From NCBI GenBank assembly GCA_051530055.1, contig CM121341.1:7232784-7296783 (forward strand): 64,000 nucleotides of DNA, read 5' to 3'. The position numbers and the translations under genes are program-made. Origin of the DNA: Neoechinorhynchus agilis. Its lineage: Eukaryota; Animalia; Acanthocephala. Positions 1-58,799 of the stretch are shown one piece after another. The stretch's first letter is position 1; every line of letters starts with the position of its first letter. Below the pieces are notes generated by a model that searched no databases, was not told the DNA's origin, and was given only the letters and a program-made list of their open reading frames with translations.

Positions 1-271
1 TGCGTTAATTGGTTTCATTTTAGATATTGATTTTAACTTTTTCTGCATATGTGAATAAAGCAATTGAGATTAACATCGGCAATTCGAATCAGCCGGTAAT
101 AAATCTTTAAAAAGGTTGAACATCCAGCTTCGACAATCGATTTCTGATGTTGTGCGTTCGAAAACTATTAGCGATTTCCTTCACATAAAGTAAAAAATGA
201 TCTTTAATTCCACTAAAAGTTTGTTGGAAGGGGGAAGCTGTGAACGGTCTTTCCAGCTTATCCTGTGCAGA

Positions 272-359
272 TGTTCCCGCCGGGAATCGAACCCGGATCT
301 CGATGTAAATGCGCTTTTCCGCGTAAATAACTCCGTGCTTTCCTCTTAGCTACCGGAAC
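272..359 (-). tRNA. tRNA-like gene copy with an acceptor-stem mismatch and a 1-nt insertion
   Basis: Variant of the 757-843 sequence. Confidence 0.55.
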
Positions 360-756
360 CCGTTATTATTGCCAAAAACAGCTATGTAAATACATTTAAA
401 AACTAAACACATAATTTTTACAAGTTTAAATTGTTTTTCAAAAAACAGTCCTATCGATAACAAGCCTGCATAGAGCGAGCAACGCATTGAAATGTTATTG
501 GTTTCATTTTAAATATTGATTTTAACTTTTTCTGCATATGTGAATAAAGCAATTCGTTAACATCGGCAATTCGAATCAGCCGGTAATAAATCTTTAAAGG
601 TTGAACATCCAGCTTCGACAATCGATTTTTGATGTTGTGCGTTCGAAAACTATTAGCGATTTCCTTCACATAAAGTAAAAAATGATCTTTAATTCCACTA
701 AAAGTTTGTTGGAAGGGGGAAGCTGTGAACGGTCTTTCCTGCTTATCCTGTGCAGA

Positions 757-843
757 TGTTCCGGCCGGGAATCGAACCCGGATCTCGATGTAAATGCGCT
801 TTTCCGCGTAAATACTCCGTGCTTTCCTCTTAGCTACCGGAAC
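757..843 (-). tRNA. tRNA-like gene, 87 nt, anticodon ambiguous (TTT or TTA), extended or intron-containing anticodon arm
   Basis: Reverse complement: GTTCCGG TA GCT-AAGAGGAA-AGC A CGGAGTATTTACGCGGAAAAGCGCATTTACATCG AGAT CCGGG-TTCGATT-CCCGG CCGGAAC A. Perfect 7-bp acceptor stem, canonical T-arm/B-box and a D-arm. Confidence 0.7.
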
Positions 844-1243
844 CCGTTATTATTGCCAAAAACAGCTATGTAAATACATTTAAAAACTAAACACATAATT
901 TTTACAAGTTTAAATTGTTTTCAAAAAACAGTCCTATCGATAACAAGCCTGCATAGAGCGAGCAACGCATTGAAATGTTATTGGTTTCATTTTAAATATT
1001 GATTTTAACTTTTTCTGCATATGTGAATAAAGCAATTGCGATTAACATCGGCAATTCGAATCAGCCGGTAATAAATCTTTAAAAAGGTTGAACATCCAGC
1101 TTCGACAATCGATTTTTGATGTTGTGCGTTCGAAAACTATTAGCGATTTCCTTCCCATAAAGTAAAAAATGATCTTTAATTCCACTAAAAGTTTGTTGGA
1201 AGGGGGAAGCTGTGAACGGTCTTTCCTGCTTATCCTGTGCGGA

Positions 1244-1330
1244 TGTTCCGGCCGGGAATCGAACCCGGATCTCGATGTAAATGCGCTTTTCCGCGTAAAT
1301 ACTCCGTGCTTTCCTCTTAGCTACCGGAAC
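1244..1330 (-). tRNA. tRNA-like gene, same as 757-843
   Basis: Same sequence in the next repeat unit. Confidence 0.7.
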
Positions 1331-1730
1331 CCGTTATTATTGCCAAAAACAGCTATGTAAATACATTTAAAAACTAAACACATAATTTTTACTAGTTTAA
1401 ATTGTTTTTCAAAAAACAGTCCTATCGATAACAAGCCTGCATAGAGCGAGCAACACATTGAAATGTTATTGGTTTCATTTTAAATATTGATTTTAACTTT
1501 TTCTGCATATGTGAATAAAGCAATTGCGATTAACATCGGCAATTCGAATCAGCTCGCAATAAATCTTTAAAAAGGTTGAACATCCAGCTTCACAATCGAT
1601 TTCTGATGTTGTGCGTTCGAAAACTATTAGCGATTTCCTTCACATAAAGTAAAAAATGATCTTTAATTCCACTAAAAGTTTGTTGGAAGGGGGAAGCTGT
1701 GAACGGTCTTTCCTGCTTATCCTGTGCAGA

Positions 1731-1810
1731 TGTTCCGGCCGAACCCGGATCTCGATGTAAATGCGCTTTTCCGCGTAAATACTCCGTGCTTTCCTCTTAG
1801 CTACCGGAAC
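1731..1810 (-). pseudogene. tRNA-like copy with a 7-nt T-arm deletion
   Basis: gggaatc is missing relative to the other copies, which destroys the B-box. Confidence 0.6.
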
Positions 1811-2048
1811 CCGTTATTATTGCCAAAAACAGCTAACCTTCCATCGTAATCGCAATTGCTTTATTCACATATGCAGAAAAAGTTAAAATCAATATTTAAA
1901 ATGAAACCAATAACATTTCAATGCGTTGCTCGCTCTATGCAGGCTTGTTATCGATAGGACTGTTTTTTGAAAAACAATTTAAACTAGTAAAAATTATGTG
2001 TTTAGTTTCTAACTGTGTTTCCTAGAGATAAAACGCTAACCTTCCATC

Positions 2049-2134
2049 GTTTTGTAGCTAAGTTGAAAGCACGAAGTATTTACGCGGAATAGCGCATTTG
2101 CATCGAGATCCGGGTTCGATTCCCGGCCGGAACA
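2049..2134 (+). tRNA. diverged inverted tRNA-like copy
   Basis: GTTTTG TA GCTAAGTTGAAAGC ACGAAGTATTTACGCGGAATAGCGCATTTGCATCG AGATCCGGGTTCGATTCCCGGCCGGAACA; T-arm intact, 5' acceptor strand altered. Confidence 0.5.
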
Positions 2135-2982
2135 TCTGCATAGGATAAGCAGGAAAGACCGTTCACAGCTTCCTTCTTTCAAGAAATTAGTTATAACTTT
2201 TAGTGGAATTAAAGATCATTTTTTACTTTAGGTGAAGGAAATCGCTTATAGTTTTCGAACGCACAACATCAAAAATCGATTGTCGAAGCTGGATGTTCAA
2301 CCTTTTTAAAGATTTATTACCGGCTGATTCGAATTGCCGATGTTAATCGCAATTGCTTTATTCACATATGCAGAAAAAGTTAAAATCAATATTATTGTTG
2401 TCGGAATGAAGATATATTTAAAGATCTTCTCAAATTGATTTTTTTAGTTGATAAATATTTGCAATTTATATGTGAAAAAGTCATCTAAGCATAAAATGTC
2501 GGCGATAATTTTTTGATTGCGTTGATTACTTTAAATGTTTCAAGAAACCTACATGCTCATTTGTTGAAAACGACGTCGAACGCTTTAAATTTTCGAATCT
2601 AGCAGTCGTCGAATCTCTTCGATTTATCGATTAATTCAACGAAAAACCCCCAGAGAAGATAAAAATCATGTCGATCAGGGATCGTAGTATTTAATACTCT
2701 TATAGAAAGAAAAAAAACAACCAGGAACACTTCACGTCGCTGAATTCCCTTACGAAGCAAGGTACATAAACTACTGCCATTCTGAATTATTATCGTCTTT
2801 AAAAACGTCGTTTTCGGATGAAAACTGACCATTAATCGGATAATTTACATTGCATTTATCGTTAGCCTTGCGTAGTAACCTGTAAAGTTTTGGTCAAACT
2901 ACCATTGTTCGCTTAACCTCCAGCACGAAATCGTAACTTTCGTTAGCGTTGCAATTGCAAAAAAAACTCAATTAGAGATTAA

Positions 2983-5900
2983 ATGATCTGTTTCTTGTTT
3001 CTCGTTCTTGTTCTACATAAAATCATCCATACTAACGGAAAAAATATTTTTTGTTATTACACAAATTGGGCCCAGTATCGACCAGCCGAGTTTGCTTTCA
3101 ATCCTGAGCATCTAAATCCGTTTATTTGTACTCACTACATCTACGCGTTTGCCGTTGTCCATCGATCAACGTATAAAATACAACCTTATGAATGGAATGA
3201 TGAGGATCAGGATGCTAGGCAGCCTGGAATGTAAGCTAATGTATCATTGAACTATTAGGAATAATTTCAGAAATTTTATATACGAGTTATTTATTCTATT
3301 GAACAAAATTGTTCTTTTTGTCGTCCTCCATCGCATCAGTTTTATTATGATTGTTCGTCAACTTCCTTGATGGCCGCGTTGGATCGCTGCAAGCATATCG
3401 CTGATGGCATATTTCAGCATCTTTCCCAGTGCTTCTTTTCTGAAGCATCCCAACGTTTCCACCTCAATCGGGATAAATATGCCCATCGAGCGAGGAGTAT
3501 TTATGCCGCTTCTTTTCCTCGCGGAAGCTGGCGACTGCCCCCTGCTGCGTGTTGGGGCAAGTAAAATCCCAAAAAGTATTTTTATTGGAAACTCATTTTA
3601 TAAGCGCAATATGCGTTTAGATCCTCATATAATTAGACTTTTTGTTAAAAAATTGAACAATGAATATTTTGAACGTAACCTCGGTCCGAGTGGATTAATT
3701 AGACGCTGAATGATATTCAAAAGTGATATTTTCGCGAATTTTCGCATGTACACCACTGGGAATTTCAAAATTGAACAATGAATATTTTGAACGTAACCTC
3801 GGTCCGAGTGGATTAATTAGACGCTGAATGATATTCAAAAGTGATATTTTTGCATGTACACCACCGGGAATTTCTCTAAAATCACTGCTTCCCTTTTTGT
3901 TAAAAAATTGAACAATGAATATTTTGAACGTAACCTCGGTCCGAGTGGATTAATTAGACGCTGAATGATATTCAAAAGTGATATTTTTGCATGTACACCA
4001 CGGGAATTTCAAAATTGAACAATGAATATTTTGAACGTAACCTCGGTCCGAGTGGATTAATTGCATGTACACCACTGGGAATTTCAAAATTGAACAATGA
4101 ATATTTTGAACGTAACCTCGGTCCGAGTGGATTAATTAGACGCTGAATGATATTCAAAAGTGATATTTTTGCATGTACACCACCGGGAATTTCTCTAAAA
4201 TCACTGCTTCCCTTTTTGTTAAAAAATTGAACAATGAATATTTTGAACGTAACCTCGGTCCGAGTGGATTAATTAGACGCTGAATGATATTCAAAGGTGA
4301 TATTTTTGCATGTACACCACCGGGAATTTCTCTAAAATCACTAAAATTGAACAATGAATATTTTGAACGTAACCTCGGTCCGAGTGGATTAATTAGACGC
4401 TGAATGATATTCAAAAGTGATATTTTTGCATGTACACCACCGGGAATTTCTCTAAAATCACTGCTTCCTTTTTGTTAAAAAATTGAACAATGAATATTTT
4501 GAACGTAACCTCGGTCCGAGTGGATTAATTAGACGCTGAATGATATTCAAAAGTGATATTTTGGATTTTCGCATGTACACCACTGGGAATTTCAAAATTG
4601 AACAATGAATATTTTGAACGTAACCTCGGTCCGAGTGGATTAATTAGACGCTGAATGATATTCAAAAGTGATATTTTTGCATGTACACCACCGGGAATTT
4701 CTCTAAAATCACTGCTTCCCTTTTTGTTAAAAAATTGAACAATGAATATTTTGAACGTAACCTCGGTCCGAGTGGATTAATTAGACGCTGAATGATATTC
4801 AAAAGTGATATTTTCGCGATTTTCGCATGTACACCACTGGGAATTTCAAAATTGAACAATGAATATTTTGAACGTAACCTCGGTCGAGTGGATTAATTAG
4901 ACGCTGAATGATATTCAAAAGTGATATTTTTGCATGTACACCACCGGGAATTTCTCTAAAATCACTGCTTCCCTTTTTGTTAAAAAATTGAACAATGAAT
5001 ATTTTGAACGTAACCTCGGTCCGAGTGGATTAATTAGACGCTGAATGATATTTAAGGGTGATATTTTTGCATGTACACCACCGGGAATTTCTCTAAAATC
5101 ACTGCTTCCCTTTTTGTTAAAAAATTGAACAATGAATATTTGTAACGTAACCTCGGTCCGAGTGGATTAATTAGACGCTGAATGATATTCAAAAGTGATA
5201 TTTTTGCATGTACACCACCGGGAATTTCTCTAAAATCACTTCGGCACTTTTCCTCAGTACCGATATTAAATATCTTTCTGGATTTTTAGGTATTCAAGGT
5301 TTATCAGGGAAGTGAGGAAAGGACAGGGTAGAGCCTTGCTGGCAGTCGGAGGTTGGAACTTCGGCATGCGTGTGGCTTCACCAATGATGGATGATTCACA
5401 CAAACGGGCGATATTCATTAATAGCACAATGGAGCTTCTAAAAAAATAGTAAGTTTTTCGAGCATTGAAAAAGTTTTAAAAACGTACAATTAGCGACTTT
5501 GATGGACTGGATGTTGATTTTGAGTATCCTAATAATCAAGACACCGGTGGACGCCCTGCCGATAAAATGAACTTTTTGATTCTAATAAAGGTTACAAATC
5601 AACTGAAGTTTTAAGCTGATCTCTCGTTCAAACAGGAAATTAGAGACGCCTTTAATGCTGAGCTCCTTCGATCAGGACGAGCATACCTTTTAACTGCAGC
5701 TGTCGCACCACTACCAAACAGGGCAAATAACGCCTATACTCCTGGTCAATTGGCAAAGTTGGTCTCAAATCTTTCAAGGTCTTCAACCGACTCAAATTTA
5801 TCTTAGATATGTCGATTATATCAGCGTTATGGCATATGATATGCACGGTGCTTGGGAGCGAACAGTTGGGTTCAATGCACCACTGAAGTCTTCGTTGAAC

Positions 5901-6525
5901 ACAAGCTCCCCTTTCCACGATTGGAGCGTAGTAAGCTATATAACGAAAAAAATGACATTAATTTAACTGATGATTTCTTTAAGAACTCAGCTATTAAGTA
6001 CTGGATTAATGATCAACATTTTCCCAGGGAGAGGATTAATCTGGGTCTAGCACTCTACGGTCGGACATTCACGCTTCAAAGTCCAAATGATTTAAGACCA
6101 TATTACGGAAGGAACCGAGGACCCGGTATCGCTGGACCTGGAACTCGTGAACCAGGAGTTTTGAGTTTTGTTGAAATTTGGAAGAAGTATTTACCGGATC
6201 AGAAGCATCCGCGGTGGTTTGATCTTGAACGGTTTGTGCCATATATTACCGACGGAAATGAATGGGTGACTTTTGATGATGCAGAAAGTTTGCTTCTTAA
6301 GGTTAGCAGCAATCTTTAACACTTAGTTATAATACAAAAAAATAGGTGAATTTCGCAAAATGTTACGATCTGGGAGGACTGATGTTTTGGGCTCTAGACT
6401 ATGATGATTTCAATGGCCAATGTGGAATCAGCGTTAATAATGATAAAAAGTTTCCTTTGATCCGAGCATGCCGACACTTGTTTGAACATCCTCTAAACGT
6501 TGACGTTTGTCGCATTGTAATCTGA
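2983..6525 (+). CDS. GH18 chitinase, secreted, 7 exons, no chitin-binding module seen
   Basis: Signal-like N-terminus, CYYTNWAQYR, CTHYIYAFA, LLAVGGWNFG, catalytic FDGLDVDFEYP, VMAYDMHGAW, GLALYGRTF, WVTFDD, GGLMFWALDYDDF. Exons ~2983-3230, 5290-5447, 5494-5590, 5636-5756, 5807-5930, 5984-6300 and 6346-6525 with GT-AG introns; intron 1 is ~2.06 kb. Confidence 0.93.
3362..3570 (-). mobile_element. decayed CRE-like non-LTR retrotransposon, C-terminal restriction-like endonuclease region
   Basis: Translates as ...FIPIEVETLGCFRKEALGKMLKYAISDMLAAIQRGHQGS, resembling the FxPxAVETLG...IAIQRGNAAS motif of CRE-type ORFs. Lies in chitinase intron 1. Confidence 0.6.
3640..5240. repeat. ~118/137-bp tandem satellite, 13 core copies, in chitinase intron 1
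   Basis: Core aattgaacaatgaatattttgaacgtaacctcggtccgagtggattaattagacgctgaatgatattc repeated 13 times with alternating long and short spacer variants. Confidence 0.95.
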
Positions 6526-21549: not shown

Positions 21550-22735
21550 CTAGGCCTTCTAGCAAGCTTGACACATTCATTTTAGTTATTCAGTATTGAA
21601 AAACTTTTCTTCGTGGCTAATTCACGGGGAATCGACGTTATCCTTAAAGTTTTTCTTTATGATTGATCTTGTAAAACTTGTTTCCGTTAAAAATTATAAC
21701 TAAATACTACCAATTTTCCTGGATTTGTTGCACCTTTAGGAAATAAACAATACAGTAAAAAATTAGAAAATCTATAAAAATAGCACGGCATTTCAATGAT
21801 CGGGTCAAAAATATTCATACAAAGGAGATAATTATTGTAGAACGCGGAGGTAGTATTAAAAATTGTTTCTAAAATTTAATTAAAAACTTTTCGAACTAAA
21901 AAAGTTTCATACAAAAATGAGATAATTATTGGAACGCGAAGGTAGTATTAAAAATTGTTTCTAAAATTTTATTAAAAATTTTTCGAACTAAAAGTTTCAT
22001 ACAAAAATGAGATAATTATTGTGGAACGCGGAGGTAGTATTAAAAATTGTTTCTAAAATTTTATTAAAAACTTTTCGAACCAAAAGTTTCATACACAAAT
22101 GAGATAATTATTGTGGAACGCGAAGGTAGTATTAAAAATTGTTTCTAAAATTTTATTAAAAACTTTTCGAACCAAAAGTTTCATGCACAAATGAGATAAT
22201 TATTGTGGAACGCGAAGGTAGTATTAAAAATTGTTTCTAAAATTTTATTAAAAACTTTTCGAACTAAAAGTTTCATACAAAAATGAGATAATTATTGTGG
22301 AACGCGAAGGTAGTATTAAAAATTGTTTCTAAAATTTTATTAAAAACTTTTCGAACCAAAAGTTTCATACAAAAATGAGATAAACGCGAAGGTAGTATTA
22401 AAAATTGTTTCTAAAATTTTATTAAAACTTTAAAGCACAAATATTAAGAAGAATATTAAAAATTGTTTCTAAAATTTTATTAAAAACTTTTCGAACCAAA
22501 AGTTTCATACAAAAATGAGATAATTATTGTGGAACGCGAAGGTAGTATTAAAAATTGTTTCTAAAATTTTATTAAAAACTTTTCGAACTAAAAGTTTCAT
22601 ACAAAAATGAGATAATTATTGTAGAACGCGGAGGTAGTATTAAAAATTGTTTCTAAAATTTTATTAAAAACTTTTCGAACCAAAAGTTTCATACACAAAT
22701 GAGATAATTATTGTGGAACGCAAAGGTAGTATATG
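21550..22735. repeat. composite repeat: ~270-bp unique-like leader plus ~10 copies of a 92-bp minisatellite
   Basis: Unit gagataattattgtggaacgcgaaggtagtattaaaaattgtttctaaaattttattaaaaacttttcgaac...; leader shared with ~27130-27600. Confidence 0.92.
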
Positions 22736-24536
22736 AATTTCAAACTAGTCTCGCCGTCACCTGTAATGCCACAAACGTTTCGCTTTCCTCGCCCCCTCCC
22801 GGTTAATTGTTTATTTCATGCAAATTGGCGTCTATTTTCTCGATCAATAATCAACAAAACCCTATTATGGAATAAATACGCCTGTATTAATCTTTGACAA
22901 GAACCAGCACACGATGCTTATGCTGCTTTCCTTGCTCCGTCTAAAGGATCGCATACGCCGCCCGTCTCTATGAGAACATCAGACATCACAACTGCCACCC
23001 AGCTCGTTAGCACGTCTTATTCCTCCGATCGACATTCCTTTCCAAGTCAGTTTCGTACGGTTCCGTGTCTTCTTTAACTCATCTTCGCAATCCCGTCACC
23101 AAGCGACGGCAAGTGCATTTCTCACCCCTCGAACACTCATTGAGTTTTGTGATAAACTTCAGGTGATTGTAATGACCTCGCCGACACTGGTCAGAAGACA
23201 AGATAACATCTCATCGGCACCGATCGCCATAACGCCACTATCTCTTCTGCAAACAAACTGTCCGAGTCTCGTGTCTACACAACAAATCAAAGCAATACAA
23301 GAGCAATGTTCGGCATCACAATCTCAAAAAAGAAACGCTGATGATCGAGATAATTTGCTTTCAGTCCGTTGCTGCAGGTGCTCGGCTAACATACAAATGA
23401 GGAACGAAGCAGAACCAAAGAGCTTTCAACAAACTAACAGGTATTTTTGTTTTATGATTTCGAATAATTTCGATAAACTAATAACCCGTGGCTGCTTTTC
23501 GAAAGATTAGAGTGTGCCCGAGGAATCCTTCTTGTAGACGACTGGCTACAATTCCATTATTTCTAATTGAATTTTAGGGATTTTAGAAGAAAATGTTGCA
23601 CTATTATAGTATATAAATATCCTTTTGCTTTTCAGACGTTAGACATAGAAATATAAAACCAAATTTTACCACGACTACTCAAGTACTTTTTCAACTTTGT
23701 GAGATATTTAATCTTGATTACAAGATTTTTATATTTGTCGATTTGGCATATTTACTCGCTGAATAGCCTGAAACGTGAACTTTAAAACTAGATAATCATT
23801 ATTTTTTGTGGCGTTAACCATCAACGATTTAAACTGTAGTAACCGCACAGTTTATTTCGAATAATTTCAATTTTATCCATCATAGGCGTTCTATATAGGT
23901 CCACAGCCCGTTAATCTTTAAAACTAATTTAAAGTAGTGAAACTAGATTTGGTGGTATCTGCATAGGTCAGCCATAAAAGCCCTATTCATCAATCCAATT
24001 TATGCTACTAGAGAATGTCTTCTCAGGTGTCTGACATGGTAAGATAAATCTCCAATGCAAGTTGACTGAAGCACCCTGTCAATTCGATGGTCCTTTCGCG
24101 CAGTTATAAAGATAAGACCGTTTAAGTATTATTCGCTTGATCGACAAACAGGAGATGAAATGCGACTATGGACAGCGGGTGATAATGATTTGTATAGTCG
24201 CTGGAATTCTAGACAGCTATTTTACTTCAAAAGGGTACGCTGGAGCGTGCTCCTAACTTCCTATTTTGATTAAGACTTATTTTTAATCTTCTGAAACTCA
24301 GCTTAAATATGTGACGATGATCAACATGATTTAAGGGTTATTTATTTTAAACATAGCATTGTAAAACTTCAAGATTCGAATTTCACGAAAGTTTTCTATG
24401 GCCGAAATGATACGTGTGTCGCATTTCTTACTAGTGGCACAATTGGACATTAAAGAAATTCGGTGCATTGTCTTAATGACACTCAGTTTATGAACTAAAA
24501 TGGAAATTTAGCAGAAATCTCGTATATTTGAGACTA

Positions 24537-26095
24537 GATTTACAAAAAGAACAGCCTATAATTTTAAAACTCATTGATATTGTAAATTTTTAAGCTGCAA
24601 ACGAGCTGATTGTTGCTTTAAAGAATCATCTCTCCTTACTCTAGGACTACATTTACAAAAAGAACAGCCTATAATTTATAAAACTCATTAATATTGTAAA
24701 TTTTTAAGCTGCAAACGAGCTGATTGTTCCTTTAAAGAATCATCTCTCCTTACTCTAGGACTACATTTACAAAAAGAACAGCCTATAATTTATAAAACTT
24801 ATTAATATTGTAAATTTTTAAGCTGCAAACGAGCTGATTGTTGCTTTAAAGAATCATCTCTCCTTACTCTAGGACTACATTTACAAAAAGAACAGCCTAT
24901 AATTTATAAAACTTATTAATATTGTAAATTTTTAAGCGGCAAACGAGCTGATTGTTGCTTTAAAGAATCATCTCTCCTTACTCTAGGACTACATTTACAA
25001 AAAGAACAGCCTATAATTTATAAAACTCATTGATATTGTAAATTCTTAAGCTGCAAACGAGCTGATTGTTCCTTTAAAGAATCATCTCTCCTTACTCTAG
25101 GACTACATTTACAAAAAGAACAGCCCATAATTTATAAAACTCATTGATATTGTAAATTCTTAAGCTGCAAACGAGCTGATTGTTCCTTTAAAGAATCATC
25201 TCTCCTTGCTCTAGGACTACATTTACAAAAAGAACAGCCCATAATTTATAAAACTCATTGATATTGTAAATTTTTAAGCTGCAAACGAGCTGATTGTTCC
25301 TTTAAAGAATCATCTCTCCTTACTCTAGGACTACATTTACAAAAAGAACAGCCTATAATTTATAAAACTCATTGATATTGTAAATTCTTAAGCTGCAAAC
25401 GAGCTGATTGTTCCTTTAAAGAATCATCTCTCCTTACTCTAGGACTACATTTACAAAAAGAACAGCCTATAATTTATAAAACTTATTAATATTGTAAATT
25501 TTTAAGCTGCAAACGAGCTGATTGTTGCTTTAAAGATTCATCTCCCCTTACTCAGGACTACATTTACAAAAAGAACAGCCTATAATTTATAAAACTCATT
25601 GATATTGTAAATTCTTAAGCTGCAAACGAGCTGATTGTTCCTTTAAAGAATCATCTCTCCTTACTCTAGGACTACATTTACAAAAAGAACAGCCTATAAT
25701 TTATAAAACTCATTGATATTGTAAATTTTTAAGCTGCAAACGAGCTGATTGTTGCTTTAAAGATTCATCTCTCCTTACTCTAGGACTACATTTACAAAAA
25801 GAACAGCCTATAATTTATAAAACTCATTGATATTGTAAATTCTTAAGCTGCAAACGAGCTGATTGTTCCTTTAAAGAATCATCTCTCCTTACTCTAGGAC
25901 TACATTTACAAAAAGAACAGCCTATAATTTATAAAACTTATTAATATTGTAAATTTTTAAGCTGCAAACGAGCTGATTGTTGCTTTAAAGATTCATCTCT
26001 CCTTACTCTAGGACCACGTTTACAAAAAGAACAGCCTATAATTTATAAAACTCATTGATATTGTAAATTTTTAAGCGGCAAACGAGCTGATTTTT
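24537..26095. repeat. 114-bp tandem satellite, ~14 copies
   Basis: Unit atttacaaaaagaacagcctataatttataaaactcattgatattgtaaatttttaagctgcaaacgagctgattgttgctttaaagaatcatctctccttactctaggactac. Confidence 0.95.
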
Positions 26096-27129: not shown

Positions 27130-28180
27130 ATTAGGTTTCTAGCAAGCTTGGCAACTTAAAAATGGGTAATTAATAGGCAAATAATAAAATTGCGAGTCAG
27201 TAATAAGTTCTTTAATTCAGTATTGAAAAACTGGCCTGCGCCGATGAATAGGGGCGTCGAAGAAACTATAAATTATGTATGCTCTTAAAAAAAATTCATG
27301 GGGAATCGACTTTATCCTTAAAGTTTTTCTTTATATGAGTGATCTTGTAAAACTTGTTTCCGTTGAAAATTATGATTTGTTGCACCTTTAGGAAATAAAC
27401 AATACAGTAAAAAATTAGAATATCTATAAAAATACCACGACATTTCAATGATCGGGTCAAAAATATTCATACAAAGCTGATAATTATTGTAGAACGCGGA
27501 GGTTGTATTAAAAATTGTTTCTAAAATTTGAACCGTTAGAAAATAAACAATACAGTAAAAATTTAGAAAATCTATAAAAATAGTATGGCATTTCAATGAT
27601 CGAACCAAAAGTTTCATGCACAAATGAGATAATTATTCTAGAACGCGGAGGTAGTATTAAAAATTGTTTCTAAAATTTTATTAAAAATTTTTCGAACCAA
27701 AAGTTTCATACAAAAATGAGATAATTATTGTGAAACGCGAAGGTAGTATTAAAAATTGTTTCTAAAATTTTATTAAAAACTTTTCGAACCAAAAGTTTCA
27801 TACAAAAATGAGATAATTATTGTAGAACGCGGAGGTAGTATTAAAAATTGTTTCTAAAATTTTATTAAAAATTTTTCGAACCAAAAGTTTCATACAAAAA
27901 TGAGATAATTATTGTAGAACGCGAAGGTAGTATTAAAAATTGTTTCTAAAATTTTATTAAAAATTTTTCGAACTAAAAGTTTCATACAAAAATGAGATAA
28001 TTATTGTGGAACGCGGAGGTAGTATTAAAAATTGTTTCTAAAATTTTATTAAAAACTTTTCGAACCAAAAGTTTCATACATAAATGAGATAAACGCGGAG
28101 GTAGTATTAAAAATTGTTTCTAAAATTTTATTAAAAAATTTTCGAACTAAGAGTTTTATACACAAATGAGATAATTATTG
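27130..28180. repeat. second copy of the composite leader plus 92-bp minisatellite (6-7 units)
   Basis: Same leader (ctagcaagctt...ggggaatcgac..tatccttaaagtttttcttt...gatttgttgcacctttaggaaataaac) and unit as 21550-22735, same orientation. Confidence 0.9.
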
Positions 28181-29144
28181 TATCAATATTACGATCCTTT
28201 CTAATTCCGTATAAAAATCTTTTTTGAATTAGGATATTTCGTTAACAATGAATGCTGAAGCGAGGTTTCCTAGAGAAAAAATCTTTTCAGCTCTAAAATC
28301 TCGAAGGATTATCTCATGATGAAGATATGGTTCATAGCTTAAAACAAAGAAATCCCAACGAATTTATCGAGAACTCGGTTACTCTTAACGACTGCTGTAA
28401 AAATTGGCGTCCGAAAAACCCCGATTTAACACAATAATTATAAAATTTCGAATTTTTGATCTTTTCGCCATAAACCAAGGAAACCAAATCCTTTGCTACT
28501 AGGAATTAAATTCGGTTTTGGGTCTTAATTTAGTTTGGGGTTATTTGCAGCATTACTTACTCTGATTTTTACACAAAATCTTCATTTCTTAATCCATTTA
28601 ATCTTCTACTGTTCTTCTACACCCCTTTGTCGATCAAAACGTTAGAGAATTTCTCTTGTCTAAAATTACAATTTTTCTTCTTATGTCTTGCGTCGGACGA
28701 GCAGCGTAGAAAACCCTTCATGTTATTATCGAAAACCAACACCGATTCTTCATCTCGAGGCCTTCACCTTTCATCATCTCGAGAGAGAGGATGTCAACAA
28801 GCATTTTACAAGGAGATACGACACTTTTGGATTTATTTGGTATCCTTTTTAATTTCATTCTGTTTTGCCTTTAATACAAATTCTCTCGATTTAATATTGC
28901 CGATTTTCGCTTATAAGGACAACGAAATCTCACGTAATCCCTACGCTTCCGTGGTCTCCAGTGATTTCATAACGAATACCGCTAATCAGGTCAATGCCGA
29001 GAAGTTCTCAAGTTTCCCATTTAACCAATGCTTCTTTAAACTTACTATTTTTAATAATGTTAAAATTAAAAATTCCTAGTATCATCCGCACTAATTATTG
29101 CTGCTTTTTAAGTTTTCCTAAAGATATGAAGGAATTTTTGATTA

Positions 29145-30060
29145 AACAAGTTTTCAATCTATTGAGCTAAATTGTGTTTTTAAATGGAAAGATAAAAGAT
29201 TTCCCCACCCAAATGTCCATTTCGAAAATCAAAACTTGATCACTTAAAGATTTTAATCTATTGAGCTAATTTTTGTTTTTAAATGGAAAAGATTTTCCAC
29301 TCAAATGTCCATTTCGAAAACCAAAACTTGATCATTGAAGCGGCTTAAAAATCTAGTAGTATTTCAAAAGGTTTCAATCTATTGAGTTAATTTTTGTTTT
29401 TAAATGGAAAAGATTTCCCCACCCAAATGTCCATTTCGAAAACCAAAACTTGATCACTTAAAGATTTTAATCTATTGAGTTAATTTTTAAATGGAAAAGA
29501 TTTTCCCACCCAAATGTCCATTTCGAAAACCAAAACTTGATCATTTAAAGATTTTAATCTATTGAGCTAATTTTTGTTTTTAAATGGAAAAGATTTTCCA
29601 CTCAAATGTCCATTTCGAAAACCAAAACTTGATCATTGAAGCGTCTTAAAAATCTAGTAGTATTTCAAAAGGTTTCAATCTATTGAGCTAATTTTTGTTT
29701 TTAAATGGAAAAGATTTCCCCACCCAAATGTCCATTTCGAAAACCAAAACTTGATCACTTAAAGATTTTAATCTATTGAACTAATTTTTGTCTTTAAATG
29801 GAAAAGATTTTCCCACTCAAATGTCCATTTCGAAAACCAAAACTTGATCACTTAAAGATTTTAATCTATTGAGTTAATTTTTAAATGGAAAAGATTTTCC
29901 CACCCAAATGTCCATTTCGAAAACCAAAACTTGATCACTTAAAGATTTTAATCTATTGAGCTAATTTTTGTTTTTAAATGGAAAAGATTTTCCCACCCAA
30001 ATGTCCATTTCGAAAACCAAAACTTGATCATTGAAGCGGCTTAAAAATCAAGTAGTATTT
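29145..30060. repeat. 87-93/121-bp tandem satellite, ~9 units
   Basis: Core aatctattgagctaatttttgtttttaaatggaaaagattttcccacccaaatgtccatttcgaaaaccaaaacttgatca; some units carry a ~30-bp extension. Confidence 0.93.
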
Positions 30061-41599: not shown

Positions 41600-42430
41600 G
41601 GTTGAAAATCATCCGTCTGTTTAGTTATGAAGCCTAACAGCTCGTTTTTCCAGGATTTGCCTTTCTACTAGGCATAGGATGCTATCAATCCAGCGCAGAG
41701 GGTCTCGACATCTTCGGCCACAACGGATCCAATCATGATATTTTCTCGGAGTGACACGGCCGTACAATAATGTTGATAACACTCCCAACATTTAAAGTTC
41801 TCCGAATCAATATATTTCTAACTTGATTTATTCGTTATCAAGTACAAAAGGTACTGGTCAACGCTTCGCAACCATAAAAAAGAATGAGACGCAGAATGGT
41901 TGTGATTTCCTAGACATTTCCTGGTACGGCGTCTTTTTTGAGGATTAGATACAGGACTCCAATGTTCTGTCCAAACTTCTCGATAATCTTATGCATTTTG
42001 ACGCCCTGATACTTGATGAAGTCAATTTTAGGTAATGCACCGCCGTTTATCTGTACTAAACACTCGATGTGTTCTTGATCTTCATGGCAGTTGAACTTGA
42101 ACGACAGTTAAACTGCGCCCGATTCATCAGGGATGATTTGTCCATGGATCGTTTCCGGCGCAATCCTTTCCGAGGCTTCATTTTAATATGTCGAGTTGAA
42201 GAAATCCGATTGCCGTGTGCTAGATCTTCGATTCCGGCAATTTAAATCGTTCTCACAGACGTTTGTGAGTTTTTTATGTTGTTGCACTTCCATGACCTTC
42301 TTAGCACCGTTTAGCTATCCTTGCAGAAGTCTAGACGTCCATTCGTCACGCTCAAAATGGGCACACGATTTTAAAAAGGTTGCACAAATTCCAAACGAAC
42401 TCGTCGTCTTTGGCCAGATCGATTTCGATC
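41600..42430 (-). mobile_element. heavily decayed LINE RT relic
   Basis: IEIDLAKDDEFVWNL..LFKI (cf. LDLxKAFDxVxHxxLLxKL), QINGGALPKIDFIKYQGV (cf. INGxxxxxVxxFKYLGV), QILEKRAVRL. Confidence 0.45.
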
Positions 42431-44030
42431 ACTGGTCAGCTTTCTCGTCCACGAGTTAATGAGAGATTACTTCGATTTTGCCCGGAAATCCACAGGGTCA
42501 AAACTAGAAGTTGAAACAGTGGTGAGCAAATGAATTTCGGAGCGCCTCATCAACGATTTTTTTTGCCTTCTGAAGTCAAAGTTCATAACAGATCTTTCCT
42601 TCGAATAGCTCCCGAAGTCTCACGACCTTCCCTGCGTCGTCGTCTTTGGCCCCATCGATTTCGATCACTGGTCAGCTTTCTCGTCCACGAGTTAATGAGA
42701 GATTACTTTGATTTTGCCCGGAAATCTACACGGTCAAAACTAGAAGTTGAAACAGTGGTGAGCAAATGAATTTCGGAGCGCCTCATCAACGATTTTTTTG
42801 CCTTCTGAAGTCAAAGTTCATAACAGATCTTTCCTTCGAATAGCTCCCGAAGTCTCACGACCTTCCCTGCGTCGTCGTCTTTGGCCCCATCGATTTCGAG
42901 CACTGGTCAGCTTTCTCGTCTACGAGTTAATGAGAGATTACTTTGATTTTGCCCGGAAATCCACACGGTCAAAACTAGAAGTTGAGACGATGATGAGCAA
43001 ATGAATCTCGGAGCGCCTCATCAACGATTTTATTGCCTTCTGAAGTCAAGGTTCATAACAGACCTTTCCTTCGAATAGCCCCGAAGTCTCACGACCTTCC
43101 CTGCGTCGTCGTCTTTGGCCCCATCGATTTCGAGCACTGGTCAGCTTTCTCGTCTACGAGTTAATGAGAGATTACTTTGATTTTGCCCGGAAATCTACAC
43201 GGTCAAAACTAGAAGTTGAAACAGTGGTGAGCAAATGAATTTCGGAGCGCCTCATCAACGATTTTTTTGCCTTCTGAAGTCAAAGTTCATAACAGATCTT
43301 TCCTTCGAATAGCTCCCGAAGTCTCACGACCTTCCCTGCGTCGTCGTCTTTGGCCCCATCGATTTCGAGCACTGGTCAGCTTTCTCGTCTACGAGTTAAT
43401 GAGAGATTACTTTGATTTTGCCCGGAAATCCACACGGTCAAAACTAGAAGTTGAGACGATGATGAGCAAATGAATCTCGGAGCGCCTCATCAACGATTTT
43501 ATTGCCTTCTGAAGTCAAGGTTCATAACAGACCTTTCCTTCGAATAGCCCCGAAGTCTCACGACCTTCCCTGCGTCGTCGTCTTTGGCCCCATCGATTTC
43601 GAGCACTGGTCAGCTTTCTCGTCTACGAGTTCATGAGTAAGATATCACTTCGATTTTATTGTTTTCCATCATAAAAGAACAATGGGGAATGAGGATCCCG
43701 AGCCCCACACTTTCGCGCGATCTCAGATTTTGCTCGGTAATCAACACGGCCAAACTAGAAGTTGAAACAGTGGTGAGCAAATAAATTTCGGAGCGCCTCA
43801 TCAACGATTTTATTGCCTTCTGAAGTCAAGGTTCATAACAGACCTTTCCTTCGAATAGCTCCCGAAGTCTCACGACCTTCCCTGCGACGTCGTCTTTGGC
43901 CCCATCGATTTCGAGCACTGGTCAGCTTTCTCGTCTACGAGTTCATGAGAGATTACTTTGATTTTGCCCGGAAATCTACACGGTCAAAACTAGAAGTTGA
44001 AACAGTGGTGAGCGAATAAGAGACTTTTCC
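42405..44030. repeat. ~235-bp tandem repeat, 7 copies (one interrupted by a ~100-bp insert near 43640)
   Basis: cagctttctcgtc recurs at ~42437, 42673, 42908, 43142, 43377, 43611 and 43923. Confidence 0.95.
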
Positions 44031-44089: not shown

Positions 44090-46368
44090 TAAATAAAACA
44101 CCCATTTTCCGTTCGATAATAAATCCGGAATAAAACATGAGGGTGTTGGGAAACTTCTTCGCGACTCTGAAGAGGATAAAAATTTGGAGCAACGGATTAA
44201 CAGCGTTACCCTCCTCTGATTCCTTTTCAGATAACCGAAAAAAAGCTTCCTGACGAAGACGTCGAAAATTTGAAGAAATAAAACACCCATTTTCCGTTCG
44301 ATAATAAATCCGGAATAAAACATGAGGGTGTTGGGAAACTTCTTCGCGACTCTGAAGAGGATAAAAATTTGGAGCAACGGATTAACAGCGTTGCGCTCCT
44401 CTGATTCCTTTTCAGATAACCGAAGAAAAGCTTCCTGACGAAGACGTCGAAAATTTGAAGAAATAAAACACCCATTTTCCGTTCGATAATAAATCCGGAA
44501 TAAAACATGAGGGTGTTGGGAAACTTCTTCGCGACTCTGAAGAGGATAAAAATTTGGAGCAACGGATTAACAGCGTTGCCCTCCTCTGATTCTTTTTCAG
44601 ATAACCGAAGAAAAGCTTCCTGACGAAGACGTCGAAAATTTGAAGAAATAAAACACCCATTTTCCGTTCGATAATAAATCTGGAATAAAACATGAGGGTG
44701 TTGGGAAACTTCTTCGCGACTCTGAAGAGGATAAAATTTGGAGCAACGGATTAACAGCGTTACCCTCCTCTGATTCCTTTTCAGATAACCGAAGAAAAGC
44801 TTCCTGACGAAGACGTCGAAAATTTGAAGAAATAAAACACCCATTTTCCGTTCGATAATAAATCCGGAATAAAACATGAGGGTGTTGGGAAACTTCTTCG
44901 CGACTCTGAAGAGGATAAAAATTTGGAGCAACGGATTAACAGCGTTGCCCTCCTCTGATTCCTTTTCAGATAACCGAAGAAAAGCTTCCTGACGAAGACG
45001 TCGAAAATTTGAAGAAATAAAACACCCATTTTCCGTTCGATAATAAATCCGGAATAAAACATGAGGGTGTTGGGAAACTTCTTCGCGACTCTGAAGAGGA
45101 TAAAAATTTGGAGCAACGGATTAACAGCGTTGCGCTCCTCTGATTCCTTTTCAGATAACCGAAGAAAAGCTTCCTGACGAAGACGTCGAAAATTTGAAGA
45201 AATAAAACACCCATTTTCCGTTCGATAATAAATCCGGAATAAAACATGAGGGTGTTGGGAAACTTCTTCGCGACTCTGAAGAGGATAAAAATTTGGAGCA
45301 ACGGATCAACAGCGTTGCCCTCCTCTGATTCCTTTTCAGATAACCGAAGAAAAGCTTCCTGACGAAGACGTCGAAAATTTGAAGAAATAAAACACCCATT
45401 TTCCGTTCGATAATAAATCCGGAATAAAACATGAGGGTGTTGGGAAACTTCTTCGCGACTCTGAAGAGGATAAAAATTTGGAGCAACGGATTAACAGCGT
45501 TGCCTCCTCTGATTCCTTTTCAGATAACCGAAGAAAAGCTTCCTGACGAAGACGTCGAAAATTTGAAGAAATAAAACACCCATTTTCCGTTCGATAATAA
45601 ATCCGGAATAAAACATGAGGGTGTTGGAAACTTCTTCGCGACTCTGAAGAGGATAAAAATTTGGAGCAACGGATTAACAGCGTTACCCTCCTCTGATTCC
45701 TTTTCAGATAACCGAAAAAAAGCTTCCTGACGAAGACGTCGAAAATTTGAAGAAATAAAACACCCATTTTCCGTTCGATAATAAATCCGGAATAAAACAT
45801 GAGGGTGTTGGGAAACTTCTTCGCGACTCTGAAGAGGATAAAAATTTGGAGCAACGGATCAACAGCGTTGCCCTCCTCTGATTCTTTTTCAGATAACCGA
45901 AAAAAAGCTTCCTGACGAAGACGTCGAAAATTTGAAGAAATAAAACACCCATTTTCCGTTCGATAATAAATCCGGAATAAAACATGAGGGTGTTGGGAAA
46001 CTTCTTCGCGACTCTGAAGAGGATAAAAATTTGGAGCAACGGATTAACAGCGTTGCCCTCCTCTGATTCTTTTTCAGATAACCGAAGAAAAGCTTCCTGA
46101 CGAAGACGTCGAAAATTTGAAGAAATAAAACCCTATTTTCCGTTCGATAATAAATCTGGAATAAAACATGAGGGTGTTGGGAAACTTCTTCGCGACTCTG
46201 AAGAGGATAAAAATTTGGAGCAACGGATCAACAGCGTTGCGCTCCTCTGATTCTTTTTCAGATAACCGAAAAAAAGCTTCCTGACGAAGACGTCGAAAAT
46301 TTGAAGAAATAAAACACCCATTTTCCGTTCGATAATAAATCCGGAATAAAACATGAGGGTGTTGGGAA
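44090..46368. repeat. 185-bp tandem array, ~12.5 units (retrozyme-like)
   Basis: Near-identical units; cttcctgacgaagacgtcgaaaatttgaag is present 12 times. Confidence 0.97.
44431..44460 (+). ncRNA. minimal type I hammerhead ribozyme motif (representative of 12 copies)
   Basis: CUUC CUGACGA AGACGUC GAA AAUU U / GAAG: 4-bp stem I, CUGANGA and GAAA core, short stem II, palindromic AAUU stem III, predicted cut at 44456/44457. Confidence 0.7.
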
Positions 46369-46543
46369 AAGAGGCTTTCCATGCTAGCTCTCGAGAGCGA
46401 TGCATGAGAAGAAGACACGAAAGAAACGTGTATACGTCACTGATGCACACCGCTGGCAGAATTTCTAGATTTGCCGCACACACACGGACACTCATCTTTC
46501 TTTTGCTCGTGCGTACACAAAACGAGCGTGTAGACGGCAGTAA

Positions 46544-48242
<1,699 letters not shown>

Positions 48243-56836: not shown

Positions 56837-57544
56837 CCCAACTGATTATATGATTTCGGCATAAGGGGTTTGAGTAAATGCCGGCGGCGTCCTTGACAGA
56901 TTGAACAGGTTTGTTCAATCTTTACTCGTCTGAAACGTATATAGAAAGTAGATAAATAAGAATTATTAATTGTCGAAATTAAATGTAAACAACTAATCAT
57001 GTTCGGACGCCGTGCACTAATTCATATACGATTATCACTGAGTCTAGTAATAAATTGTGGCTATTAGAAGAAATAATAAGCTGAAGTAATTAAAAAAAGC
57101 ATACACTTATGAATTTCGAGAGGTGAGTTATGAATATAACATATTTATATTTCAGTGCAGGATTCACATATTCGTCCACTCCCGAGATGCTTGGCATGGA
57201 GATGATAGCTGTCCAAATTATTTTTGGATAACAGGATCACAATATGATCAAGACGAAATTAAAACATCGATTTTTGGAAAGTACTTGCGGTTGTTTTAAA
57301 TCGCAAGTTAGAGACACATAAAAGCAGAAAAATGTAATTCAGCGTAAAGTTTTTGGGCAATAAATGAACAATTTAGAATCTAACATAACGTGTTAAACGA
57401 TTTGTTTGTATCTTTAGAGCACTTGAGACCTCATTGGACATAATGTGAATTTAAATTGCGTCCATAGAGTCTGACATAATGCTCTAAACGATTTGATTAT
57501 CAAGAAAAATCCGAACGAATAAAAATATTTCGAAAAAGGAAACC

Positions 57545-58582
57545 TCATTCGGGTCACCTAAAAAAGGTTTTTATTGTTTTGTATGGCTCGGGTATCCGGG
57601 GAGATCGCTATTACCGTGGTTCGGACGAGTTTAAAAATGCTCAAAACGATTTAACCATCAAGAGAGAAAAATCCACCGGGATGATAGAGTTGAAAGGCTT
57701 GTTCGGGTCACCTAAAAAAGGTTTCCATTGTTTTGTATGGCTCGGGTATCCGGGGAGATCGCTATTCCCGAGGTTCGGACGAGCTTAAAAATGCTCTAAA
57801 CGATTTAACCATCAAGAAAAAAATCCATCGGGATGATAGAGTTAAAAGCCTCGTTCGGGTCACCTAAAAAAGGTTTCCATTGTTTTGTATGGCTCGGGTA
57901 TCCGGGGAGATCGCTATTCCCGAGGTTCGGACGAGCTTAAAAATGCTCTAAACGATTTAACCATCAAGAAAAAATCCACCGGGATGATAGAGTTAAAAGC
58001 CTCGTTCGGGTCACTAAAAAAGGTTTCTATTGTTTTGTAGGCTCGGGTATCCGGGGAGATCGCTTTCCCGGGTTCGGACGAGCTTAAAAATGCTCTAAAC
58101 GATTTACACAAGAGAAAACGTCGAGTTAAAAATGCTCTAAACGATTTACCACAAGAAAAAAATCCACCGGGATGATAGAGTTAAAAGGCTCGTTCGGGTC
58201 ACCTAAAAAAGGTTTCCATTGTTTTGTATGGCTCGGGTATCCGGGGAGATCGCTATTCCCGAGGTTCGGACGAGCTTAAAAATGCTCTAAACGATTTAAC
58301 CATCAAGAGAGAAAAATCCACCGGGATGATAGAGTTGAAAGGCTTGTTCGGGTCACCTAAAAAAGGTTTCCATTGTTTTGTATGGCTCGGGTATCCGGGG
58401 AGATCGCTATTCCCGAGGTTCGGACGAGCTTAAAAATGCTCTAAACGATTTATCGACCAAGAGAGAAAAATCCATCGGGATGATAGAGTTGAAAGGCTTG
58501 TTCGGGTCACCTAAAAAAGGTTTCCATTGTTTTGTATGGCTCGGGTATCCGGGGAGATCGTTATTCCCGAGGTTCGGACGAG
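57545..58582. repeat. 154-bp tandem repeat, 7 units, relatively GC-rich with several short hairpins
   Basis: ttcgggtcac recurs at ~57548, 57702, 57854, 58005, 58193, 58347 and 58501. Confidence 0.95.
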
Positions 58583-58799
58583 CGGAACAAAACAACAAAA
58601 ACCTTCTTTTGTTTGATTGACCGATGAAAAGATTTGTTTTTCGTTTGGAATATTTCAATAAAATATATTTTAGTTTGGGCTGGACCCACAATTCTAGTAG
58701 AGAAATCGTAGACTTGGAGGAACACAACAGAAACGTCTATTGATAAAAAAAGATCAATTTTTTTGTTTGATATTAAGATTAAAAATCTCCCGTTTTTGC

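Follow-up and report, generated by a model that had tools for sequence, protein, structure and literature searches.

Tandem arrays of transfer RNA (tRNA) genes with decaying members have already been reported from an acanthocephalan. The genome of Pomphorhynchus laevis contains 551 tRNA genes, of which 29 are called pseudogenes (PMC7310846). The portion of the tRNA listing in that publication on which we draw includes Ala-CGC arrays with a period of ~336 bp and scores running from 54 down to 24 (‘pseudo’), Glu-TTC arrays with a period of ~1076 bp, and a Lys-TTT cluster holding ‘pseudo’ members together with one ‘Undet NNN’ entry (PMC7310846). More widely, clustering and fast turnover of tRNA genes and their pseudogenes are general in eukaryotes, zebrafish included (PMC2888827), with Entamoeba as the extreme case of tRNA gene arrays (PMC2652664). 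Here we describe an array of tRNA-like sequences with an abnormally long anticodon arm from Neoechinorhynchus agilis, at the left end of a 64,000-nt stretch of contig CM121341.1 (assembly GCA_051530055.1, positions 7,232,784 to 7,296,783), hereafter the window. N. agilis is an eoacanthocephalan that parasitises mullets. We conclude that this nuclear locus is probably a local tandem array of tRNA-derived pseudogenes, the copies of which are possibly still transcribed. Read in this way, it is one more instance of a decaying tRNA gene array, for which the acanthocephalan precedent is already published (PMC7310846).

The array crosses the left edge of the window, and its remainder lies in an overlapping segment, L001 (CM121341.1:7228612-7249308; window position = L001 position − 4172). 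The analysis covered the window and 4.2 kb further to the left, 68 kb of DNA in total. Tandem Repeats Finder (TRF) returned a 487-bp unit repeated 3.8 times at window positions 8-1835 (97% matches) and, for L001, a tandem array at 2683-6007 with 6.8 copies of a 488-bp unit (96% matches). One minus-strand tRNA-like sequence is present per tandem unit, and these sequences recur every 488 bp; we label them U1 to U7, and the single inverted copy on the plus strand INV. The entire locus comprises seven tandem units and one inverted partial unit over ~3.7 kb, with an HSP20 gene on one side and a GH18 chitinase-like gene on the other. Within the window, the tandem array (1-1835, minus strand) consists of the end of U4, then U5, U6 and U7, followed by 25 nt of another unit, as defined by TRF and unit alignment. 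By sequence reading and alignment, the junction between the array and the inversion (1832-1847, plus strand) is a 16-nt motif, GCTAACCTTCCATCGT, that occurs a second time at 2034-2049, and the inverted partial unit (1847-2393, plus strand) is a mosaic of ~1.1 units. The second occurrence of the motif stands directly 5′ of the INV tRNA-like copy, in place of the usual upstream sequence, and the duplication looks like the scar of a template-switch or rearrangement event.

Alignment of the eight tRNA-like copies showed that U1, U2, U3, U5 and U6 are identical 87-mers. The first three lie at L001 2977-3063, 3463-3549 and 3951-4037, while U5 (757-843, minus strand) and U6 (1244-1330, minus strand) lie within the window; U5, which folds as a cloverleaf, was taken as the family consensus. 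Both score 46.5 bits against the Rfam tRNA model (RF00005, gathering score 29 bits). The consensus 87-mer has a cloverleaf as its minimum free energy (MFE) structure, at −30.8 kcal/mol (z = −2.95), and none of 200 shuffled sequences equalled it. A pattern scan for the T arm and acceptor gave four matches against zero expected, and a covariance model made from the array's own tRNA-like copies (R1) recovered the eight copies and nothing more from the 68 kb. Rfam, TRF, the pattern scan and R1 together confirm the central claim of a preliminary description of this DNA, which had recognised a tandem tRNA-like element with an abnormal, long anticodon arm, and they support its tRNA-derived nature.

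The remaining three of the eight copies carry disabling lesions. U4 (272-359, minus strand, 88 nt) has a 1-nt U insertion where the anticodon loop starts and a C-to-G change that breaks one acceptor pair, both identified from alignments, and scores 40.4 bits with the Rfam model. U7 (1731-1810, minus strand) has lost 7 nt (GATTCCC), so that sequence from the T loop and from the 3′ T-stem strand is missing and the B box is destroyed; it scores 96.8 bits with R1 and is unreported by Rfam. INV (2049-2134, plus strand) differs from the consensus at seven positions and by one deletion. Its acceptor 5′ strand reads GUUUUG (one base lost, two G-U pairs), its D-loop AGAGG has become AGUUG, which affects one of two G residues, and its anticodon arm carries three changes; its Rfam score of 28.7 bits falls under the gathering score. 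A canonical cloverleaf, with a 7-bp acceptor stem, a 5-bp T stem, a 7-nt T loop and a score above the gathering threshold, is therefore seen in the consensus copies and, by score, in U4, with INV below the threshold. The acceptor and T arms, first described as perfect, are so in only five of the eight copies, the same five that score 46.5 bits, and are imperfect in U4, U7 and INV.

With its 488-bp period and seven tandem copies, two of them damaged, followed by a damaged inverted copy, the N. agilis locus resembles the P. laevis arrays in having one tRNA type arranged head-to-tail, regularly spaced at a few hundred bp, with decaying members, in the same animal group. It differs in that even the best copies have an aberrant arm and no functional founder is visible; for P. 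laevis, the comparison uses the published description. The Entamoeba arrays (PMC2652664) and the clusters of zebrafish and other eukaryotes (PMC2888827) share the tandem or clustered arrangement and the rapid turnover, but consist of working tRNA genes that take up a large share of the genome, whereas the N. agilis locus is one array of 3.7 kb with aberrant copies.

The feature that sets these copies apart is a 34-nt anticodon arm, CGGAGUAUUUACGCGGAAAAGCGCAUUUACAUCG (786-819 in U5, minus strand), which we analysed by folding, by enumeration and by reading of the sequence. The arm folds as CGG.AGUA paired with UAC.UCG around one A.A mismatch, followed by an internal loop and a GC hairpin that has 3 bp and an A-rich loop of six bases. 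The MFE fold thus reproduces the arm as originally drawn, with six of seven positions of CGGAGUA/UACAUCG paired beneath a GC hairpin cap. The extended arm is kept in eight of eight copies, including the one that is 8% diverged.

To define which anticodons such an arm could present, we enumerated all removals of a single contiguous segment in three stem registers. In the normal register (CGGAG/CAUCG, 17 nt removed), position 33 is always A or C, and an intron at 37/38 leaves the loop UAUUUAA with the anticodon UUU. In the register shifted by one (GGAGU/ACAUC, 15 nt removed), U33 can be obtained, but position 37 is always a pyrimidine; the available anticodons are CAU, UAU, UUU and UUA, with an intron at 37/38 giving UUA and C37. 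These two outcomes, UUU with A33 and UUA with C37, are those proposed in the preliminary description, and both were reproduced by the exhaustive enumeration. A third reading, absent from that description, emerged in the register shifted by two (GAGUA/UACAU): a 13-nt intron at 37/38 leaves Val-UAC with U33 and G37, but with two extra pairs below that make a 7-bp stem. We know of no standard cytoplasmic tRNA with a 7-bp anticodon stem. In the exhaustive enumeration, neither the direct sequence nor any single intron removal produced a canonical 5-bp stem and 7-nt loop with both U33 and a purine at 37.

In eukaryotes, work on the yeast and Xenopus endonucleases defines the features that direct splicing: an intron at 37/38, a pair between position 32 and intron base −3, and a bulged 3′ splice site. 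On the MFE structure, the 32/−3 pair was sought in the three registers and only U.U, A.A and U.C oppositions were found; the 3′ splice site of the normal register is buried in a U-A/A-U helix, and the consensus fold contains no bulge-helix-bulge (two 3-nt bulges, 4 bp apart). Compared with intron-containing pre-tRNAs (Tyr-GUA, Ile-UAU and Leu-CAA), the N. agilis copies are alike in the 13-17 extra nt in the arm and in the extended helix, and differ in having no canonical mature loop on a 5-bp stem, no 32/−3 pair, no bulged 3′ site and no bulge-helix-bulge.

These results bear on whether the array encodes a functional, unusual intron-containing decoder, either Val(UAC) with a 13-nt intron and a 7-bp stem, Lys(UUU) with A33 and a 17-nt intron, or a UUA ochre reader with C37 and a 15-nt intron. 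We consider this very improbable, although several observations fit it: the cloverleaf body and promoter boxes are intact in most copies (46.5 bits), five copies are identical, and the UAC reading combines U33 and G37 with a discriminator A. In the portion of the P. laevis listing cited above, the 87-nt length of the N. agilis copy is matched by the 87-88-nt Tyr and Ile-TAT genes, and the implied 13-17-nt introns come near the 14-15-nt introns, which occur there only in Tyr-GTA, Ile-TAT and Leu-CAA genes; no suppressor (Sup/TTA) appears anywhere in the tRNAscan table (PMC7310846). Against a decoder, the Lys-TTT and Val-TAC genes of the same portion are intron-less (PMC7310846), each reading breaks a near-invariant feature (A33, a pyrimidine at 37 or a 7-bp stem), the stem carries the A.A mismatch, and neither the 32/−3 pair nor the bulged 3′ splice site is present. 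An ochre reader is not expected because the long open reading frames (ORFs) of the window use standard stop codons. The disabling lesions, which have not been purged, and the long trailer described below speak against a decoder as well.

Automated anticodon assignment was equally inconsistent. ARAGORN, a check suggested at the outset, detected tRNA-like copies, but its anticodons disagree between them: it calls U4 Asn-att, U5 and U6 Met-cat (intron at 32/33) and INV Ala-agc, and it also proposes spurious introns of 475 and 792 nt. A single anticodon identity across the copies was thus not obtained from the ARAGORN calls. A parental isotype was also sought, as a lead only, by comparing four intron-removed versions with a panel of human tRNAs; none stood out, the top scores of 16-19 being spread over Ile, Tyr, Thr, Val and Lys.

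A closer reading of the arm suggests another origin for its additional nucleotides. A 6-nt direct repeat, ATTTAC (AUUUAC in RNA), borders a 12-nt near-palindrome, GCGGAAAAGCGC, at 793-816 (minus strand), and occupies the same spot in every copy. From this sequence arrangement, the extra segment may be no true intron but an old 18-nt insertion that duplicated 6 nt, possibly the mark of an excised transposon. Transfer RNA genes are targets of Dada transposons, whose duplications measure 6-7 bp (PMC3706591). The ATTTAC repeat flanks just 12 nt with no transposon sequence, and is unlike the GCG- or TAGC-type duplications given in the part of the Dada report considered here (PMC3706591).

A mobile origin of a broader kind would make the copies the head of a tRNA-derived short interspersed nuclear element (SINE), or part of some other mobile element, amplified in tandem at a later time and belonging to a genome-wide satellite. 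The tRNA-like head, the A and B boxes and the degenerate anticodon region are as expected for SINE heads, and the ATTTAC repeat around the 12-nt insert resembles a target-site duplication or excision scar, such as the 6-7-bp ones of Dada. We judge this reading quite improbable: no A-rich or simple-repeat tail was found at the unit ends, a blastn search with the 488-bp unit found no dispersed copies or fragments in the 68 kb, and the locus contains no transposon sequence. SINEs are also scarce in acanthocephalans and rotifers, making up 0.38% of the P. laevis repeat fraction (PMC7310846). Satellites form long homogeneous arrays of many tens to thousands of units, usually at several loci, and here 6.8 tandem and 1.1 inverted units lie between the unique HSP20 and GH18 genes with no second copy in the 68 kb. 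The earlier suggestions of a SINE head and of a satellite were therefore both rejected for this locus.

Like SINE heads, mascRNA-type RNAs share with the N. agilis copies a tRNA-like cloverleaf in which anticodon function is degenerate or missing. The N. agilis locus differs from the former in having no SINE body, tail or dispersal, and from the latter in score, with the mascRNA/menRNA model (RF01684) giving 23.1-25.5 bits against a gathering score of 42.5 bits; this candidate was rejected. No other RNA family was matched among Rfam and the curated tRNA-like families. Searches for relatives with a 63-aa antisense ORF that spans the tRNA-like copy returned no candidate related repeats, and exact patterns of the anticodon arm and 5′ body gave no matches in JGI metagenome and GTDB genome contigs, a weak negative given that these collections are mostly prokaryotic. 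The N. agilis publications consulted describe neither tRNA genes nor the 488-bp repeat.

By sequence reading against textbook consensus sequences, U5 has an A-box-like element, TAGCTAAGAGG, at 826-836 (minus strand; tRNA nt 8-18), which matches TRGCNNAGTGG at 10 of 11 positions, and a B box, GGTTCGATTCC, at 768-778 (minus strand; tRNA nt 66-76), which matches GGTTCGANNCC at all 11. The discriminator base is A in most copies. Downstream of the tRNA-like 3′ end of U5, a T4 run first appears at 700-703 (minus strand; +54 to +57), a possible RNA polymerase III (Pol III) terminator with a long trailer; a distance of 54 nt would be more than expected for a working tRNA gene. Pol III transcription is plausible because the A and B boxes, the acceptor/T minihelix and the discriminator A are intact in most copies.

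To assess whether the copies are under selection, we compared the divergence of their parts. In INV, the distal spacer (189 nt) is 98.4% identical to the tandem consensus, and distal spacer parts are 97-98% identical overall; the tRNA part is 91.9% identical, and the 60-nt trailer 90% with a 10-nt indel. The 60 nt upstream are 66% identical, the proximal ~40 nt being essentially unrelated (replaced or diverged). The INV tRNA part has therefore diverged as fast as its adjacent trailer (91.9% vs 90%, Fisher p = 0.77), and its fold (z = −0.93) is no improvement on shuffled sequences. Four substitutions fall in INV stems, two from C-G to U-G, one from G-U to A-U and one from U-A to U-G, all of them one-sided transitions. 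The last two, in the anticodon-arm stem, had been noted before and are real, but they do not serve as evidence of selection: compensatory two-sided changes number zero in the INV stems, a shuffle control did at least as well in 500 of 500 trials, and the tRNA part is no better conserved than the trailer. Random decay of stem positions, which the preliminary description had named as refuting a functional RNA, is the pattern seen in INV, a single diverged copy.

Several observations weigh against a pseudogene array. Most copies retain intact A and B boxes and an intact acceptor/T minihelix, five of the seven tandem copies are identical, all four substituted stem positions of INV retain a pair, and every copy keeps the extended arm, even INV with its 8% divergence. 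Across the tandem units, the tRNA part also has fewer substitutions per column than the spacer (1/87 vs 33/400, Fisher p = 0.018). We do not rely on this per-column test, because the contrast vanishes when counted per event (3/87 vs ~25/400, p = 0.45), the spacer changes being clustered; all three tRNA-part events among the tandem units are damaging. The verdict rests on eight copies at one locus.

The same observations bear on a non-translational role, in which the array would produce a Pol III tRNA-like RNA or act as a DNA element: a tRNA mimic, a source of small RNAs, a tDNA boundary between HSP20 and GH18, or, together with INV, a hairpin-RNA locus. Such a role would accommodate the intact promoter boxes and the minihelix for RNase P and RNase Z processing and CCA addition, the arm kept in all eight copies, and the position of the array, which fills the intergenic space from ~60 bp after the HSP20 stop codon. 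The inverted arms (174-199 nt, 98% complementary) make double-stranded RNA possible given read-through, and head-to-head tRNA genes are a possible small-RNA source (PMC2888827). We regard it as rather unlikely, given that covariation is zero, INV decays at the rate of its trailer, the match to curated tRNA-like families is lacking (mascRNA/menRNA, 25.5 vs 42.5 bits), and the ORF search and the metagenome and prokaryote pattern scans showed no conservation beyond the locus. A bolder proposal is that the 87-nt RNA belongs to an expressed, lineage-specific family of Pol III tRNA-like RNAs in which the arm itself (7-bp stem, internal loop and GC mini-hairpin) is functional, either as an unconventional intron-containing tRNA (Val-UAC or ochre) matured by relaxed splicing or as a mimic that binds a tRNA-handling enzyme; we hold this to be the least probable of the readings.

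For the pseudogene array, we envisage the following history. The founder was a 488-bp segment holding an already aberrant tRNA gene, with an extra segment of 13-18 nt and the A.A stem mismatch. Unequal crossing-over or replication slippage may have amplified this segment, and a rearrangement added the inverted mosaic copy, with GCTAACCTTCCATCGT at two junctions. Lesions would pile up, unpurged by selection. Most copies would probably be transcribed by Pol III, and end trimming by RNase P and RNase Z followed by CCA addition would yield an 87-nt tRNA-like RNA. The anticodon arm appears to fit neither the splicing endonuclease nor the ribosome, so the RNA should not decode and no translational function is expected; decoding by the array RNA is unlikely. 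Any effect would be a by-product, arising from Pol III occupancy between two genes or from small-RNA fragments.

At present the significance of the locus is small, its practical value being a caveat for annotation, as tRNA finders give conflicting or ‘pseudo’ calls. If a processed, charged or conserved product exists, it would be either an animal tRNA that breaks the rules of U33, purine-37 and the 5-bp stem, or a new tRNA-mimic RNA.

The HSP20 gene (L001 1643-2622) is separated from the onset of the array (L001 2683) by a gap of L001 2622-2683 (window −1550 to −1489), and the array follows HSP20 on the strand of that gene; read-through from HSP20 would yield antisense tRNA-like RNA. The inverted arms of the locus are 92-98% complementary, and the array with its inverted copy (995-2393) could fold as a long hairpin, with the highest complementarity in the 174-199-nt arms noted above.

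On the other side, the GH18 chitinase-like gene occupies 2983-6525 (plus strand), its first exon beginning ~590 bp beyond the inverted unit. It comprises a signal-peptide exon at 2983-3234 and further exons at ~5312-5449 and ~5829-6525. The NCBI model for this gene, ACOME3_001703, is 199 aa long and covers the C-terminal part only, which suggests a truncated or split gene model. The long GH18 intron contains, at 3987-5240, nested tandem repeats whose periods are 75, 120, 137 and 253 bp.

The window as a whole has a G+C content of ~37%, with the many tandem repeats and long exons of a eukaryotic genome. A 719-aa TRIM2-like ORF is 100% identical to the N. agilis protein ACOME3_001706, with the next-best matches in P. 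laevis and bdelloid rotifers. Further repeats are found at 21806-22732, 24532-26092 and 27600-28182, where a 114-bp array (13.7 copies) has the same 92-bp repeat arrays on both flanks, an arrangement that possibly represents a composite repeat or a large element. Tandem arrays at 42401-43637, 44091-46369, 57543-58583 and 29148-30030 have units of 235/469 bp (5.3 copies), 185/369 bp (12.3 copies), 152 bp (3.7 copies) and ~92/301 bp, respectively. The 185-bp array is immediately upstream of a DYRK-like kinase gene (ORFs 46547-47473 and 47589-48242), with a slight overlap into its first ORF, and minisatellite-like arrays are unusually abundant in the window.

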